Origin: Dimorphilus gyrociliatus
Lineage: Eukaryota > Animalia > Annelida
Assembly: GCA_904063045.1 (NCBI GenBank)
Contig: CAJFCJ010000002.1
Span: 558,001-622,000, forward strand
Direction of reading: 5' to 3'
Length of the DNA stretch: 64,000 nt
Shown: one piece after another, positions 2,960 through 50,900 of the stretch
Numbering within the stretch: position 1 is the stretch's first letter
How the letters are laid out: each line of letters opens with the position of its first letter
Notes under the pieces: generated by a model
What the model was told of the DNA's origin: nothing
The model's database searches: none
The model's input: only the letters and a program-made list of their open reading frames with translations
Translations under genes and position numbers: made by a program

Positions 2960-5503
2960 ATGACAACTGAAGCATATCCAGATAATCAAACTACACTCAA
3001 TCCATTATGTGAATTAAATGAGTATTGTGAAACAATAGAAGATTATGAAGATAGAATACACACCTATTTGGAGCTAAAATGGTACGAATGGATCCTGGTA
3101 CAACTTTATATCATCACGTTTACAGTTGGGCTATCCGGAAATTTCTTGGTCTGCTATTGTGTATGGAAAAACCATAATATGCGAACGGTAACGAATTATT
3201 TCCTTGTTAATTTGGCAGCTGCTGACTTCTTGGTCATGCTCTTTTGTCTTCCATTCACGGTTGTGGTTAATTTCACTGAAACCTGGTTTTTTGGAGCTGC
3301 TATGTGTAAAATAATAGCTTTTATACAGGTTTATATTGTTTAAATTCTACTTCTTTAGCAAATTTTTATGCTCTACATTAAATAGGAACTCAACTCATAT
3401 AGAAAAGAGAGTATTCACAATTTTTTATTAAGCGGTTAGAGTTCTTGAGCCTTTTTTTCATTAACTTTTTTTTCCTGTTTGGGACAATAAGGTACTCTTC
3501 AACCTCATGCAATGCCAAAGGTCTGTAAACAAAAAGCTTGCTGCAGCAACAAGAATCTATAAGCTCGACCAACATTTTCTAACGAATTTTTTTTCTCAAA
3601 AATCCTTAATTAATAGAATCTCGATTACATTTTATATTACAAGCTGCACTTTCTTTTATATATTCTATTACAGATGACCACACCAAGTCATTTGAAGTTG
3701 ACATTGTTTTTTAGATGATTTATTACTTGTACATTTATAGGCCAATAGCTCAAAGGCAATCCTATTATTCGATGTGTCGTTATTTATATACGTGCATATA
3801 CATTTTATATGTAACTGTATTTTAGGAGTTCAGATTATAGAAAACAATAATCGAAAAATATTTTATCCAAATTTACAAAAACTCATTGGTCTTCAAATTA
3901 CAAATAGGGCCTATCAGTTGGAGTATCTTCTTTAACACTGACAACGATTTCGATAGAAAGATGGTATGCTATATGCCATCCGTTGAAGTTTAAATCAACT
4001 CCTCAACGGGCAAGAACTGCTATCATTGTTATTTGGGTAATATCGATGATCGCTTGGACACCAGAATTAATACTAGTGAATACAATTGTAAGCAATGTCA
4101 ACGTAATTTGGTTCACAATTTGTAAAGCGAATAATACATCCGTTTATTTGCGTTTGCAGGTTTGTTTATGTTTGTTTAACTGTTATTCTATTTAATGGTT
4201 TCCTTTTGCTCTAGCTATTTCAATTCGTTGCTGTCTATATTATGCCATTTATTATTATGTTTGTTGCCTATTTCCAAATAGCTAAATGCTTATGGAGTAA
4301 ATCAACTCCAATGTCAAGTAACTGAGAATTTTATTTTGAAAATTTTATACTGTATATTACTTTATTTTATCTTGTCAAAATTTTCAGACAAAAGTGACAA
4401 GTGCCAGGAAACTTACAGAAGTTCTTCTGCACTGGAAGCCCAGCTGCAAAATCGACGAAAAGCTGCAAAAATGCTTATAGCAGTTGTCATTATGTTTGGA
4501 ATCTGCTATCTCCCTGTATATACTCTAAATCTATTAAGGTATTGCATAATCTTATTTCATAAGAAAAATATTGCAAGATGATAGGTTGCAGCAAATCAGC
4601 CAAAAAGTCCTTGCAGAATGAGCTTTGAAAAGTATTTTATTTCATATCACGATATTTTATCGTTGAGTAAAAACTCAATCCTTAAGATTACATACTCAGA
4701 ATTATCAGTGCTTTCACATTGGCACTAAATTTGTCAAGTTTTTTTTTACTTTCATTTATCTTTGGATTACACGCAATGTCTTCAACATTTTAAGCAAAAA
4801 TTTTTGTTGTTAACATAATATCAATATTTATAAACCATTTGAAATATGCTTTTAAAGTTTATATACTAAAAATGTAGAAATAGATATAGTAATATAATCT
4901 TCTAGATCTCTTCGAAATAGTCAGGTAAAAAAGTGATTAATATTGGATTAGTAAGATCGTAACGAAAGTTTGTTTTATTTTCATCAATTATACACCATAT
5001 AGAACTTCTAGCCGTCTATCCTTTTTTCTATTGGTTTAATTTCCTTTGGATTTATCTTTCGTTGCAGATATGGGAACGTTTTAAAATCCGTAAGAGATAA
5101 TGAAGTTATGATCTTTGCCAATTCTTCTCACTGGTTGGCCTATTTCAACAGTTCCATTAATCCAGTTATTTACAATTTCATGAGCGGTTTGTTTCGTTGA
5201 AAACTGATAGAATTGTTTTGACTAATCAAGAAATAATTCTCTTAGCGCGTTTTCGACGAGAATTCAAAAGAATCTGTCTTTGTCGAGCTAATAGGAACTC
5301 AACCACTACACAAAGACCTGCCTATCCAGTTTTCAGGTATTTATTAAATATAATTTTATCGCCTTGAAAGTACAGTTTCAAGATGTATTACATTCATTAA
5401 CAACCATTTGAATTGCAGAAGGGACAGAAACGTCAACAACGCACATGATCATCATAGATTTTGCTCTAGATACAGAAAAAAAGATGTCTGTCAAACATTC
5501 TAA
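2960..5503 (+). CDS. Orexin/allatotropin receptor-like class A GPCR, paralog 1 (7 coding exons)
   Basis: Exons 2960-3328, 3908-4159, 4215-4317, 4388-4538, 5068-5186, 5246-5336 and 5419-5503, all GT-AG with consistent phase. Orexin-receptor-like motifs: WKNHNMRTVTNYFLVNLAAAD, TETWFFG, ERWYAICHPLKFKST, RRKAAKML, CYLP, SHWLAYFNSSINPVIYNFMS. Confidence 0.92.
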
Positions 5504-41848: not shown

Positions 41849-44297
41849 TTAATTGTCAATAGTGCGACCGTTACTTAAAACTACTTCAGTTAGAGGTGTT
41901 TCACGGTTCTTCGATCGCGTCGCTGATATTATTCCTCTATTTTTGCTTGATCTCGTATCCATTTTACCTTTTAAAAAGTGGGTCATCATCCTTCCCTTTC
42001 CTGGTATCTCCCTTTCTGATCGTTCTTCTGTTAGATATCCCCCAAAACTCTCTAGACACTTCATCGTATCCTCACTGATATGAATTTTCATTGCTAAATA
42101 AAAAGTTTAAAAACAAATAATACTGAGTTGAATACTTTTTAAAATCCCGGATACTAACGTACTCCTGTAGCCTCCATGATGTTAGCAATATTAACTGTAT
42201 CACCAAACAAACAATATCTCGGCATTTTAGATCCGACAACTCCAGCAACAACTGGACCTTAAAATATTGGGAGCAGATGTAAGTGATCAGATTGAACTAA
42301 TTATTCGCTTTGAAGTATCTTTAATAATCATGCTGAAGCATATAATTAGATTTCGGTTTTTACCTGTATGTATTCCAATTCGAAGCCTCAAAGTCTCTTC
42401 AGGTAGATGCTGAATATCAAACTCTTTTATACCATTTAAAAGATCCAAAGATAAAGAGCTAATTTCAGATACATGCCTCTTTCCTGTAATAAATTTAAGT
42501 CAACATGAGTTTAAAATGAAATCTTAGAAGAGCTGCATACTTATAAGTCGGATGTCACAAATTTTAACATTCTAAAGTTTAGGAAATTTCTGTATTACAA
42601 ACTAATTTTATAATAGGAATTTAAATTCCTCTTAGGTGATAATTTTACGTTAAATACATTTTTAAGTTCTGTCGGGATCGAAAAATAACACACTAAAACG
42701 TGATAACACTAATCCTTAAAATGAACAATAATCTTTTACTCTGCACTTCTAATAAATAGGCACGTATGCATGTAATTAAACTAATGGATATGTATTTTAA
42801 GATACTGGTATAGATTTGAAAATCCCACCATTTCTCTGTGGTAGTCCTGAAGCTACCATATAAGCATCTCCAATTGTCTCCACTTTGTATGCATCATATC
42901 TATCGATTGCGGTATCGAAGAAATAGTAAAGACTATTCAAAAACTGGATAACCTAATTTTTTTTAAATGATTACATTTGTATTCCATACTAGTTTAATGC
43001 TTACCTGCATGGGAGAACTTTTAGCTGAGATAGAAGTAAAACCAACAATGTCAGAAAAATATATTGTAACAGAATTAAAACTTTCAGCTGAAACCCTTTT
43101 AGATAATTTTAACTGGAGAGCAACAGACTTAGGAAGCATCTGATACAGAAGTTCATCAGATCTCTTCTTTTCCATTCGTAATTCTTTTGTTTTGCCTGAC
43201 AAGCCCAAGGCGTAATTGTGAATTGTGGCTGTTATCTTGTCTATCAAAATGATGACTATCGGACCTAAAAGTAATACTATAGCAAAGAGAAAGCTAACAC
43301 CTCCCAACTGAACATTGTTATTTGATTTCGCATCTTTGGAAACTTTTAAGATATAATCTCTGATCGTTTGTGTAAGTTTTTCAATTCCAATCAAAACTTC
43401 TTTCACATTTTTTTTCCATTTCAGAAATTCTTCATAGCTAATAATGCTAGTCTCATTGCTCATTTTCACATTAAAGTACATTATTTCATCCATTAACTCT
43501 TTTTCCATTAAATTATGTTTTTCAATTTCTGCCGTTAATATGCTAGAAATTTCTTTACTAACCTCAACTTGACTGAACGCCAAAAAATTATATTTTATGT
43601 AGTTTTGAACGAAATATGTGTCTGATCTATTAAAGAACGACTGCTTACCAAAATAGAGAGCAATGTCAAAATTCTTTTGCATTTTAATTAAGAATTTATA
43701 GGATAGAAGATCCCTCCAAATTTTCGTGTTATCAACATTTTTGGATAAAATAGTTATTGCAATCGAAAATTCATTTACTAAATCGTCATAAAATACGAAG
43801 ACTTGTTCCTTTGAAAGGCTACCATTCATAATAACGAAATGCACTTGTTGTAGCTGGCTCCGAACTGCTAGCCTGTCCTCATATATACCTTTTAGAGACC
43901 AGATGGTAATTTTCGACATCACCTTAGTGGTAATCTCAAATCTAGATGTTAAATTCCCCTTGCTTACGTGACCGTCCAAGTATTCAATTACTAAGTCTTT
44001 TTCCTTAGTTATAGAATCAATAGTGTTACCATATTCTATTACCACCAAAGTTTCTTCATAAGCCTTTTCCGTAAAATTTTTTGCACTAATAGAGCGCGCT
44101 AAACAAATAATTGCTTGTCCAAGAAGTATAACGATTGGTATAAGAGGAATAACAAGCATTTGTACAGTTTGAATTTGCTTGCCTTTTTTTGTAATAGGAT
44201 CAGCATTACAAAATCCTGATTTGATATCCACTGTACTTCCCTTAGATATATCAGAAGCAATTGAAGATCTTCGAGTAGGTATTATTTTGTTACCCAT
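41849..44297 (-). CDS. NIT-domain-type membrane guanylyl cyclase (2 TM, no kinase-homology domain)
   Basis: Exon 44297-43005 encodes TM1 ([13 protein letters not shown]), a helical sensor, TM2 and a coiled coil ([26 protein letters not shown]). Four further exons give [38 protein letters not shown] and MKIHISE. The E and C specificity residues indicate GTP. The NIT assignment is by motif resemblance. Confidence 0.88.
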
Positions 44298-44466
44298 ATT
44301 CTAGACTAGCAAGTCTCTAATTAAACTAAGCTTGAAGAAAGCTAATCTTAATATGATGTTCAGAGTCATCTATCGAGTAAGAAAAGTAAGAGATATTTGA
44401 AAGGCTTTCTCAATAAATTCATGTATATTTTCAAAAATGTGTTAGAATGCTTAAATTAAGAGAAAG

Positions 44467-44547
44467 TATATATATATATATATATATATTAATAATTTTA
44501 TACATATATTGTTGATAGTAGTAAGAATATAAGGTGTTACTGATTTG

Positions 44548-44598
<51 letters not shown>
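44467..44598. repeat. Two (TA)n microsatellites (44467-44489 and 44552-44598)
   Basis: Directly visible perfect TA runs of about 11 and 23 units between the PDE4 stop and the guanylyl cyclase ATG. Confidence 0.95.
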
Positions 44599-44600
<2 letters not shown>

Positions 44601-44920
44601 CATTATGTGCAAATATACACATGTTAATAATCGCAAAAAAGTAATATGCAGGATAGAGGCAGATCTGGACTTTTACAACGTTAACGAGTTCTTCATTGTA
44701 CGTCATAATGAGTAGTCATGTTTCTTCAAGTCACGCTTCCCAAACTATTTACAAATGGAACTTGAGCACGATTAGTACATAGTGAAACGCAGCATGATTC
44801 CGTTAAATTTCGTTAATGATGAAGTATATGGCACGGATGAAGATATTTTTTATTTGTAACTCGACATCATTCATCTTTTTATTGCCAATATATAGTCATT
44901 TCTCACACTTCTATTAATAC

Positions 44921-47900
44921 TTAAACATCTGTTATTTGGTGAACTTCTAGAGGTTCATCAATAATTGTTTCAGTTGGAGCCGGTTTAGGCTCTTCCTCCT
45001 CTAATGTTAATTCAAATTGAAACTTAGAATCTGCTGTTTCTTCAGTAGGGTTTTCGATGTCTTCAGTTTTCTGACTAAAGGAGTTCGTGGGAGACAATGG
45101 AATCATGTTATGATACCAATCCCTGTTATCTTCCAAAGCATCGAGAATATCTTGACAATCAGGGTGAACTAAGTCAGCCCAAGTTTCCCATAAAGGATGA
45201 GCGATATAGTCAATAAAACCAACCTGAAAACAAGCAATATTTTGTCAATTTTGAAGAATAAAAGCTGTTTCTCAATAATCTTACCTGACTCCTCTCAACT
45301 GTACAATTATGTCTGTCGCACATTGGGGAAATATCCATTCCTTTCTCTCTCTCTAAATCTCCTTGTCTCCAGAATTCTGTCATGACCCGATCTGTCCATT
45401 TTCTGTACAGTTCTAGTGGTTTTGCTGGGCTGCTTAGGTCAGCACAGTGTACCATATTTTGTAACACCTAAATCCCAAGGAAAAGTAATTTATGATGATT
45501 GAATGGAATAAAAAGTCTAAGAAGTATAGATTTTGCTTTCAAACACATATACTCTGTCGCTCTTTCCTCTTATAAATTAAACATTCATCGTAAGTCAGTT
45601 AGGGTGAAGCAGTGAATAATACTTAAAACGTAAGAGAGATTTAATTTTAGATTTTTCAATATATTAAAAAAACAACCTTTATTCTTGAACCATATGATTC
45701 AAATTTCACTAAAGGTCGATCTTGAGACATTTTCCTGGATTCATTAAGTGTCTTCATGTCGGCTAGTATAGCCATATGTTTACTCATATCAGTGGCAATA
45801 ACCTATTATTTAATGAAACGTACGTTGTCTTTTGGATAAAACAAAAAATAGAATATTGGTGGTTTTATACATAGCACACGTCAAACTCTCTAATAACTGT
45901 ATTCCAAGGAAAGAGAAGAAACCGCAAAACGCATAAAAACGAAAATAATTTGGCCATTGCTGTAGATTACCTGTATTCGATCCGTATAATTATCAAGCAA
46001 AAGCACCCCAGAACCAGCAACCTTTTTAGTTTCAACCATCGTTTTTAAGTCAGCCAATAAGCTCATATGTTTAGACATATCAGTGGCCAGAACCTGTGTT
46101 AGGTGAGAGTGTTAAATTGAAAAATAGCATTAAAGAAATAGAGAAAATGGCAAAGCTATAAGATACTTTTACAAGGTTTTAACAAAAAGTTAGATCGATA
46201 TTATAAAAGTGGATTGAAAATCAATTAGAAGAGAAAAATTTCTTATATTTTACCATATCAATAACCATTCTCCTTAAAGTCAATCGTTGTTTCTGAGTTA
46301 AACTGGTAAATATGTCACATCCTTCCTCTTGCAATAGTTTGAAAGCAACAGCCAGATGGTGATTTTCCAGTACACTCTCATCATTGTACATTAAAGCCAA
46401 TTCCGAACTTGTATTGATAAGATATTGATTAGTTAATCCTGGATGGTCTACGTCATGGATTGCAGATGCGAATATAGTGGCTAGCACCTCCAGTTCAGTA
46501 AAAACGTTCTGTTTGAATGAAATAAAACGATAAGATAGAGAAGTAATCTTTTCAAATAATCCCTCCTAAAAGTTAAACTGGTTCAATCAACAGTATATCA
46601 CCAGAATTAAGATAACCGCTATCTCAAATAAAACAAAGCCTTAACTTACCTCCAATGCTGGGACGGATATAAGTACGTGCGATGACTGAGTAACATCAGC
46701 AGCATGAGTAGAATTATGATATGGGTTATCTCGATGATAATGTGCCTCCAGGTGCATTAAGTAATTAATAATAGTAACCGAAGGTATTTTAAATTCTTTG
46801 AGTAGTCCCCTCTCCTAGGAAGAATATAGGTTAACTTTAAAAAATTTACCTAATCTTTATTACCTGCAGTATCGTATAAGTAACCGCTGTTAAGGGGCGA
46901 TAATCGGTTAGCTCGGCAACTTTAAAAATATCGATTCCCCACTTATCAAGATTATTCATATATTCTTCGAGTTCTTTTTCCCTATTACTTTCAACTCCAA
47001 AACGAGGAGTTATTCCGCCACTGAAACTACTAGTATGATGCAATCTTCTCACTCCACTTATTTGAGACATGGGTCCTGTAGACTTTTTACTTAAAACTGT
47101 TTTCTTTGGCTCAGCATCCTCAACCTTAAGCGTAGGTAAATCCACTTCTTGTTTATCTAATCAGTAAGTACAAAGATTTTATTCTGAGAGCGTTTTGCAG
47201 GTCAATTTTACATTTACCAAGGAAAGTGCTGCAAATATATTCGGATATTTGATTTCCGGATTTGCTTGACTCGGCAAAGTGACTCAATTCACGATTTAGC
47301 ATACGCTTAAACTATAAAAAGTAAAAAGTTATAAATATTCTTTCACTATAGAAACTATACAGAGAAATATTAAAGTAAGTATTTATTGGAGAGTGTGCTG
47401 TATTTAGTTTCTAATTAATAATTTGAAATTAATACAATAGACATTTTTCCTTAGCTAAATTTTATCATAATTCTCTGTCTCACAGAATTGAAAACTTTAG
47501 TAAAGAATAATCTATCGATATAACAATCAATAGTACCTTTAAAAAGTCTTTTCATTTCTTTCAACTATTTCTTTCAAAATTAATTTTTGATATAATAAGA
47601 AATATTTAATACATATTTACTCATAATACCTATTGAGAAATGGCGAAAAAAGATCTCTTTATATCTTTTATAATAAAAGTGACAATCTCTGACGAGTAAA
47701 GACATTCTTTAATCAAAACACTGTGGAGTAGAAACGCAATTTCAGAAAGATAGATCTTCAAATCTCAACTAGCTTAGCATTGATAGCTATACTAAAATTT
47801 AATTATACTACAAGATGATTTGTTAATAAAATCTTTGTAACACTTGCTAAAAGACCTATAAAATACGCTATTTTTACAATAGCATATTTTCTCCTTATAC

Positions 47901-50900
47901 ACTTTCAATACTAAGAAAGCAATAAATTTGTTCGAAGTGACCTTTATTTTCTAAAAATGGGAAATTGTAAAGAATTTTTAAATTATCAAAATTATTCTAT
48001 TTTTTTGTAATCAAAGAATTGTTTTGTTTTATGTTATTCGCAAGAGGGCATTAGTGCTCAATTTTTTTAACGTAAATCGTTGGATGTACAATGTTTTTTA
48101 TTCTAAAATAATTCGAATTCACTAAAGATTTTTAGGACTCACTTTGCTTGACGCCATATCTGATACACTCCGATGAGTCTGTATTGTTTCCAGTTGTTCC
48201 AAGCACCATTCCAATTCTTCTAAGGTATCCTGAGCCAGTTTTTGATAAGCCTCATCTGTCAATTAAATAATTAATAAAACACAATAATCTAATATATAAT
48301 TTAGTAAATCGAAGAATAGAATGCTCACCCGATAACTTTATGTTAGTCTGAGGAGGAGGGGTCGCAGTTGTTGTCGTAACATAGTGAGTATTTGTATGAT
48401 GTCCAATGGAACTTCCTCTCCGATTAGATCTAAAAAAACTACTAGTTAATAAATGTATCAAAATCGATATTTTAATTAATTGTAGATTCTTTAAATTTGA
48501 TTTTTTGTGCAGTAATACCACATATAAATTTATACATATACACTGTATTATTATATATATATATATATATACTGTATTATTATATATATATATGTATATA
48601 TATAGTGTATATTTTATACATATATATATATATATACTGTATATTTATATATATATATACAGTATATCTATACTGTATATTTATATACTGTATATATATA
48701 ATCAAAACTTTAAGTCTATTTCTCCAATTTTTTATTTCAAAAAAATAAGAAGGCCTTCGATGCTCTAGGAAACGAGCGTCGAATTTTCGATTAAGCCCTT
48801 AGCCCTGGAGTTGTCTTGGTGACGCTGACGTCAGCTTTCGCTTCTAACGGATTCACTCAAATTACGTTATTAAGCGTCTTTCCATAAATTTGCCAATTGA
48901 GAGAAGATATAAATTAATAAAACATTCAAAATTCTTACTTGTTTACTGGAGTTACATTTGTAAGGGATACGTAGTTATTCTTAACACTTCTTAAACTCGC
49001 CAAAATTTGAGCAAATGGAGTTACGATTAAGTCCTCTGCATGTCTAAAAGGCGAAAAATGACAATTAAATGAAGCTGTAAGTGATACACATATTGCAATT
49101 GAAGAAACGAAATGGGAAACTGTATAATAACTAGTTCTAAGTAACTGTAGTAGTATAAAAACGTCAGCAAATTGAATCTGTTTATTATATTCTTTACGCT
49201 TGGCTATAAAAACGAAGAGAAGAAATTTACAAACAGCTTTTGATAGTAAAAAAAAAATACTAAAACCGTTGTTTATAGCGCGGTAGGCGTCCTCATAGCT
49301 TCATTAAGTACGTTGTTTCGAGGGTTAATTAGCCCGATATCCGCTCTACAAACCTACCTAGGCTCATATAGGCAATGCCTAGAGCGACTCTTCTTTTTAT
49401 CAATGTCCGATAACAAATCATTGGAATCAAAAGCATCTCTACACTCTCCGCCTGAGACTTTCATGCTTCCGCCTAATTGATTGACGTCACTACACGATTC
49501 AGAGCAGCGCACTGCGTGACCTCTAGCGTCTCAATTCATCGATACTTGTGACGTCAAAGGGAATATAAACTTACAGAATATTGGGTCTAGCTAAGTTACT
49601 CTTTCTTGCAGCCTGGGGTGATCTAGAAACGTTATCCAAGCCTTGGGCCCAGGACAAGGAAAGACTCTTACTTAGACAGACATCTATTGAGTTTAAACGA
49701 CGTTCTTTAATCGCAGAATTATTCATATCGGTGGTATATTGAATAAAATAAAATCATTCTACCCTACCAAGTAGAGTACTGAATGCCGCTCGATAAAAAG
49801 AACGGAGTAGGCCAAAAACTAAGGTGAAGCACAACACGCCACCAAATGTGCTATTCTAGTCTGGCATGAAAGAATTGTTGAGAGAAAGAACTATTCACCG
49901 GTAATTTCTCATCGATAATCTTCTATATCGATTCACATCATTATGTAATTAAAGAATTCGTTAATTATAATTGAGAAAGGGTTGTAAGAAAACATTTAAA
50001 GTGGTGGCGGTTGTTTAGCCAACAGTGGTAGTATAGTAAAAAACAGTACCACAGAAGAGTACCACAAAAAAAGAAAAGCGGCCCTCACCTATGCCAAAAA
50101 GAATATTTAATATGTCTTGGTAATCCCCGCTTAATCTCATGAAACTCTTTCAAACTAGACACAGTGGTTGTCTGTCCTAACTTAGATGGAAAAATCCCAT
50201 TAGAAAGAGTAGGGAGTGAGGCTGCAAAGGTTGATATCCAAAATTCACCTCCACCCCCCGGCGACAATCCACCTTCAGATAGCGCAGTAGGTGACACTAT
50301 TGATTTTCCTCCTCGATCTCGAGGACTGGGTAGCGGAAGCATTATTCCTCAAATGGTCAATATGTGTGGTATGATACCAAAGTGGGAAAAGTCGCTGACT
50401 AAGCTCCGCATAGTCTCATTTGTATAAATACATATATATGCAGCACAATATTTATATTATATATGCTGATTATAAGTAGTATATTATGTATATAAATTTA
50501 TGTTTATAAATCCTTCTCAGGTGTTATTTCCTTCTACCTGCTCCGCAACAGTAAAACAGCAATATTACACTGTCACACACTTGCCGCCAGATTAGATTGT
50601 ATTTTTTGTAATTTAAGACTGGTCTCATTATACATTGGCTTCGCATCTTGTAATGGCGTTCCTTTGATGCCATAATGTTACACATTCATAGGCTCGAATA
50701 AACCACTACATTGAGTAAATATTGAATAAGATGCTTACGTATAGAAAGATAATTAACTAAGGAAAAGATGAGATAAAGATTCGAAACAAACCTAGTTCCT
50801 TTTTCCAAAGAAAAAGAAGGATACTCAAAATGTTCATGCCCTACCACATGCACCTTTTTTAAAGGCGGTTCACCAGACATTCTCTCACACACTGCTTGAT

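Follow-up and report, generated by a model that had tools for sequence, protein, structure and literature searches.

PDE4 is among the best-studied drug targets in cAMP signaling, and to our knowledge its isoform diversity has been described as N-terminal, with the catalytic unit of each gene invariant. The PDE4 gene of the annelid Dimorphilus gyrociliatus raises the question of whether splicing can also vary the catalytic core itself: two homologous exons stand side by side within its catalytic domain. At issue are whether the second exon is a genuine coding exon, whether it replaces its neighbor in the transcript, and which part of the enzyme would be altered by the exchange.

Layout of the PDE4 gene and its adjacent exon pair

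The window analyzed here is a stretch of 64,000 nucleotides from contig CAJFCJ010000002.1 (assembly GCA_904063045.1, positions 558,001 to 622,000), AT-rich with a GC content of 31% and with introns of 60 to 210 nt. Its minus strand contains a long-form PDE4 gene, running from approximately 56.9 kb down to 44.9 kb, whose exons matched the Pfam profiles PDE4_UCR and PDEase_I in order. The PDE4-specific regions UCR1 and UCR2 were represented by matches to PF18100 (PDE4_UCR) at 48125-48262 (E 5e-15) and 47156-47311 (E 1e-15), and successive exons covered positions 1-21, 25-109, 110-135, 150-209, and 209-237 of PF00233 (PDEase_I). A PKA-type site, RRESF, was located within the segment 54219-54404, and all 45 PDB matches of the two exons of interest, termed A and B, were PDE4A-D or PDE4-like chains. 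PDE4 is here a single gene of D. gyrociliatus with UCR1, UCR2, and PDEase_I exons. The features around the pair are as follows, in the order of transcription.

46254-46508, minus strand: upstream constant exon, 85 aa, PDEase_I positions 25-109 (E 2e-33), with the HD motif; ends ..VIDM in phase 0
46094-46253, minus strand: intron before exon A, 160 nt, holding a pyrimidine-rich block at 46138-46153
45971-46093, minus strand: exon A, the canonical copy, 41 aa, PDEase_I positions 110-134
45803-45970, minus strand: intron between exons A and B, 168 nt (142 nt in the related species)
45677-45802, minus strand: exon B, the diverged copy, 42 aa, PDEase_I positions 110-135
45468-45676, minus strand: intron after exon B, 209 nt
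45285-45467, minus strand: downstream constant exon, 61 aa, PDEase_I positions 150-209, with the metal-binding Asp; starts VLQN..
44921-45223, minus strand: last coding exon, with P-L-S-P at about 45089-45100, FQF at about 45014-45022, and the stop codon

The first-pass annotation of this DNA, made from the letters of the sequence, had placed a canonical exon and a homologous second exon 168 nt apart, both in phase 0-0 with intact splice sites, and had listed the P-x-S-P and FQF motifs as conserved. The two exons were found exactly as described, and both motifs were located in the last exon, where P-L-S-P is a candidate ERK site. The next gene downstream of PDE4 is a guanylate cyclase gene of the receptor type, also on the minus strand (window 41852-44300), in which one open exon of 445 aa with a transmembrane-like region is followed by cyclase-domain exons. 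Long TA/TATATA-type microsatellites, which translate as YIYIYI, occupy 44454-44715 between the two genes and 48255-48800 within a PDE4 intron.

Exon A comprises 123 nt, or 41 codons, between the acceptor ..aacacag/G and the donor CAG/gtaatc, and exon B comprises 126 nt, or 42 codons, between ..aataatag/G and AAG/gttgtt; the flanking borders are 46254, the end of the upstream exon, and 45467, the start of the downstream exon. With BLASTP, the two were identical at 20 of 42 positions (48%) and similar at 33 of 42 (E = 2e-13), a likeness far beyond chance, and their first ten codons were nearly identical, at the nucleotide level included. Both begin at the same PDEase_I profile position, 110. In the PDB comparison, exon A was identical to human PDE4B chains at 40 of 41 residues, while the sole relatives of exon B were again PDE4 chains. 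Adjacent, homologous, equal in phase, and each provided with its own AG and GT sites, the exons form a tandem pair of 123 and 126 nt. No third copy was detected in the 77.9-Mb assembly (349 contigs), which holds two copies only.

The part of the enzyme encoded by exon A comprises the last part of helix 11, the helix after it, a beta-hairpin with the KIM (approximately 45995-46036), and the beginning of the helix after the hairpin. When aligned with PDE4B and PDE4D chains, the swapped stretch starts shortly after Arg499 on helix 11 (numbering of PMC4371794) and ends at the start of the helix leading into the HCAD metal ligand. In exon B, the hairpin segment (approximately 45701-45745) is rewritten and one residue longer, and both helix ends differ. 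The helix pattern is kept, as is the active-site stretch ATDMSKHM, which we take to face the metal site in PDE4 structures through its residues T-D-M. Exon B also carries nonconservative changes, V20N and D38S, at two positions invariant in all other sampled exons, and these may alter the activity of the B form.

Selection on both copies and occurrence of the pair in other lineages

A word search with exon B led to one 44-aa ORF (P0007) in the Logan assemblies and from there to contigs L003 and L004, genomic DNA of a related dinophilid species with the same PDE4 gene. On these contigs the two exons followed the same order, and their AG and GT sites were kept. On global alignment of the window with L003, the introns were unalignable and the exons approximately 90% identical. 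Across eight constant exon segments, 212 of 323 synonymous sites differed (pS 0.66), against a pN of 0.024. Exon B showed 11 synonymous and 3 replacement changes (pS 0.44, pN 0.030), corresponding to an omega of ∼0.05 (0.046) and a highly significant excess of synonymous change (Fisher p = 5.6e-7). All three replacements were conservative (D>E, V>M, and K>R), and the pN was similar to the 0.024 of the constant exons. Exon A (L003 2660-2782) encoded an identical protein, with 0 replacement and 6 synonymous changes. Its pS of 0.22 (6/27 sites) was threefold lower than the 0.66 of the constant exons (p = 1.4e-5), and the synonymous divergence of exon B was also somewhat low (p = 0.049).

In the comparison of the window with L003, both copies were thus kept as coding sequence by selection, and exon B, as judged from its substitution pattern, is translated and as strongly constrained at the protein level as the rest of the enzyme. 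Conservation of the second exon in related species had been proposed as a check by the first-pass annotation and was borne out, the exon being intact in L003 with both splice sites and an omega of ∼0.05; the view that the duplicated exon is real holds as well, given a second copy that is kept as coding sequence and covers the same domain positions as exon A. Alternatively spliced exons often show reduced synonymous change, and the low value for exon A therefore suggests that this exon is not simply constitutive. It points to constraint at the nucleotide level, for example from splicing control or RNA structure.

Beyond the dinophilids, a metagenome scan with two exon-B sequences returned 80 loci with this PDE4 exon. 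The A/B pair is not general, since at 64 metagenome or assembly loci, L006 and L007 included, a single copy was followed by the downstream exon. L006 and L007 were inspected in their genomic context, and each had a single exon; L007 is a fish-like PDE4. Four loci (L008, L010, L033, and L073) carried a canonical A exon and then a diverged B exon between the same flanking exons. The first three, together with the B-only contigs L009 and L005, represent a single lineage comprising several species, and L073 represents a separate one. L009 counts among the 64 single-copy loci; its B-type exon lies so near the start of the contig that any A copy upstream would fall outside. The intron between A and B, 168 nt in the window, ranged from 142 to 1107 nt elsewhere. 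Among the B-type exons of the five-contig lineage, all of which had AG/GT sites, up to 46% of synonymous sites differed with at most one replacement, a pattern indicating that B is under purifying selection in that lineage too.

The switch is probably old, because A-then-B pairs occur in at least two other invertebrate lineages and B appears to be selected there as well. The B types of the three lineages have Leu at column 30 in common, and at columns 11-12, where they carry Asp plus His or Tyr, they are set apart from every one of the 30 distinct single or first exons. In a tree built from 41 columns, the two metagenome B types grouped together (92/91) and the dinophilid B stood on a long branch; the tree is compatible with one origin of all B exons, which may be the case. 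The exon itself is an ancient exon unit, since its borders are the same in the fish-like contig L007, which has a single copy. In several of these contigs, an intron after ..INTS interrupts the upstream exon (L008 215-576, L033 2098-2633, L073 3037-3770, and L007 8198-8607); this exon is unsplit in the window (46254-46508) and in L003, an intron loss in the dinophilid lineage. Vertebrate-type PDE4 exons were present on L045, L051, L057, L078, L079, L083, L087, and L007 and may represent host or human contamination; these contigs, together with the protein matches P0001-P0003, were included in bulk counts only.

Splicing of the pair and the kinase-docking surface

The preferred account is that tandem duplication of the 123-nt exon encoding PDEase_I positions 110-149 would have given rise to exon B, which is likely to be a functional alternative coding exon of the animal's only PDE4 gene, most likely with one copy per transcript. 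Exon B preserves exactly what the position of exon A needs and so reads as a replacement for it; on that ground there is a good probability that the pair is mutually exclusive. Exon A, nearly unchanged from human PDE4B, would belong to the common form and exon B to a less frequent or regulated one. The two catalytic cores would share their chemistry but expose different surfaces at the site where mammalian PDE4 docks ERK via the KIM. The gene is probably the source of two enzymes, distinguished by the surface loop that serves kinase docking in mammals.

The donor of exon B is weak, with T at +3, both in the window (GTTGTT, 45667-45676) and in L003 (GTTTTT, 3051-3060), and from this donor we infer a lower usage of exon B. 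T at +3 was found again in the B-type donors of L008 (1732-1741), L010 (2599-2608), and L033 (3882-3891), all GTTTGT, and the B-type donor of L073 was normal (GTAATG). The recurrence of T at +3 in the B-type donors of three contig groups amounts to a weak 5' splice site of unusual form that appears to be conserved.

A search of the sequence for a mechanism that would enforce exclusion, by frame shift, steric hindrance, U2/U12 mismatch, or RNA pairing, found none. Both exons are multiples of three (123 and 126 nt), and double inclusion of A and B stays in frame; all splice sites of the pair are GT-AG and U2-type; and the 168-nt intron between them is long enough for splicing, with no steric block. 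As to competing RNA pairing, the introns of the window and L003 contained only short AT-rich inverted repeats, none of them conserved. Exclusion may be exerted by trans factors. A pyrimidine-rich block, TTGC..TTTTCTCT, occurs shortly after the exon A donor in the window (approximately 45905-45930) and in L003 (2792-2807), and a near-copy with a 15/16 match lies upstream of exon A at window 46138-46153. A splicing repressor, PTB for example, may bind this block, or the block may have arisen by chance in AT-rich DNA.

Exon-B-like protein was absent from an HMMER search of 1.84 billion representatives. Its best three matches, P0001-P0003, were vertebrate PDE4 predictions in which whole blocks, or an identical exon, were repeated, and they were discarded as apparent artefacts of assembly or annotation. 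P0006 was a Trichuris suis PDE4 and not exon-B-like, whereas P0004 and P0005 were genomic exon ORFs, the latter a B-type exon of another lineage. When cDNA-derived fragments were sought with the downstream exon, 135/135 matches were genomic exon ORFs preceded by translated intron; the search with the exon B protein likewise gave genomic exon ORFs only, with no exon junction.

In mammals, the KIM lies on the hairpin encoded here by exon A and acts together with FQF (PMC12699188 and PMC7291338); its position is also given in PMC2929239. That the swapped segment holds the KIM, as had been noted at the outset, is correct, exon B replacing the segment that corresponds to the mammalian KIM hairpin. 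Exon A has KK, six residues, and then LLL, as in human PDE4. Exon B has RK followed either by six residues and L-V-K or by seven residues and V-K-F, which is a D-motif-like pattern with a spacer one residue longer than in A. A D-motif or KIM consists of a basic pair and, within ∼1 to 6 residues, a hydrophobic-x-hydrophobic triplet on an exposed loop. As this pattern survives in exon B, its effect on ERK may be modulation rather than loss, or there may be none, and different ERK docking between the A and B forms can be put forward only tentatively.

The first-pass annotation had also raised the prospect of different dimer surfaces, and this part was not supported. The catalytic-unit dimer contacts of PDE4D5 are MYNDSSVLEN and Arg499 (PMC4371794), and the residues matching them map to the upstream constant exon. 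A change of the PDE4D5-type dimer surface by exon choice is therefore unlikely.

Alternative readings and comparison with known systems

Exon B could be a pseudo-exon, the untranslated and decaying remnant of an old duplication. Its weak donor GTTGTT, its poor pyrimidine tract, and the changes at two otherwise invariant positions would fit such decay. A neutral copy at the divergence seen here would, however, have lost its frame or its splice sites, and exon B has kept an open frame and both sites at ∼66% synonymous difference, with introns that can no longer be aligned. The 11 synonymous changes against 3 conservative replacements (p = 5.6e-7) and the purifying selection on comparable second exons in other lineages speak in the same direction. 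A recent gene-conversion tract, or L003 being of the same species, might be invoked to rescue the idea, but both are countered by the saturated synonymous divergence of the flanking exons. The pseudo-exon reading is barely credible and is already close to refuted. The joint inclusion of A and B, always or sometimes, which would insert a 42-residue in-frame repeat in the catalytic domain, fares somewhat better and is still quite improbable. It is permitted by the phase 0-0 exons in multiples of three, by a 168-nt intron with normal GT..AG ends, and by the lack of any enforcing mechanism among those sought. Against it, the two exons occupy the same Pfam positions, and a helix-hairpin unit would be duplicated inside a compact all-helical domain. 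Exon B, moreover, retains ATDMSKHM and the helix pattern, exactly what is required at the A position, whereas an added insert would have no use for these, and exon A shows the reduced synonymous change of alternative exons.

A third reading accepts that exon B replaces exon A and holds that the exchange alters something other than ERK docking, such as stability of the hairpin region, another partner, localization, or allosteric coupling to UCR2 or the C-terminal helix. We regard this as a realistic possibility, slightly short of an even chance. A D-motif-like pattern survives the exchange, exon B keeping RK and then L-V-K-F and the B exons of other lineages having RK..LLKL, and the B types of the three lineages are marked out not by the dibasic pair but by column 30 and by columns 11-12, which lie in the preceding helix. 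On the other side, the KIM is the sole function assigned to the hairpin in PMC12699188 and PMC7291338. A wider proposal can be framed, namely, that many invertebrates possess an old, undescribed A/B switch that would change the kinase-docking hairpin and give isoform-specific control of cAMP breakdown by MAP kinases or other partners through the catalytic domain instead of the N terminus. In this breadth the proposal is speculative and rather unlikely.

Full-text searches on mutually exclusive exons in PDE4, phosphodiesterase, or dunce yielded no report of a duplicated catalytic exon, and such an exon is also absent from a study of how PDE4 splicing evolved (PMC2929239). A selected second catalytic-core exon in several invertebrate lineages would show that splicing can vary the PDE4 core itself. 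The A and B forms would constitute a natural enzyme pair differing only in the KIM-bearing hairpin and the flanking helix ends and would thereby offer a ready-made experiment on the role of the hairpin surface.

Mutually exclusive pairs that arose by tandem exon duplication occur in ion channels, myosin, tropomyosin, and pyruvate kinase M. The PDE4 exons resemble these pairs in being adjacent, homologous, of near-equal length, and of the same phase, with splice sites of their own, and in that both copies are under purifying selection, with core residues conserved and the surface variable. They differ from such pairs in that double inclusion causes no frame shift, and neither a too-short intron, a U2/U12 mismatch, nor a conserved docking/selector pairing was found. 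The worm gene as a whole is like the mammalian PDE4A-D long isoforms, with UCR1, UCR2, PDEase_I, RRESF, P-x-S-P, and FQF; its exon A is identical to human PDE4B at 40/41 residues, and its exon borders are those of the vertebrate contig L007. Vertebrate PDE4 diversity results from alternative promoters and N-terminal exons (PMC2929239 and PMC12699188), whereas the variation encoded in the worm gene lies inside the catalytic core.
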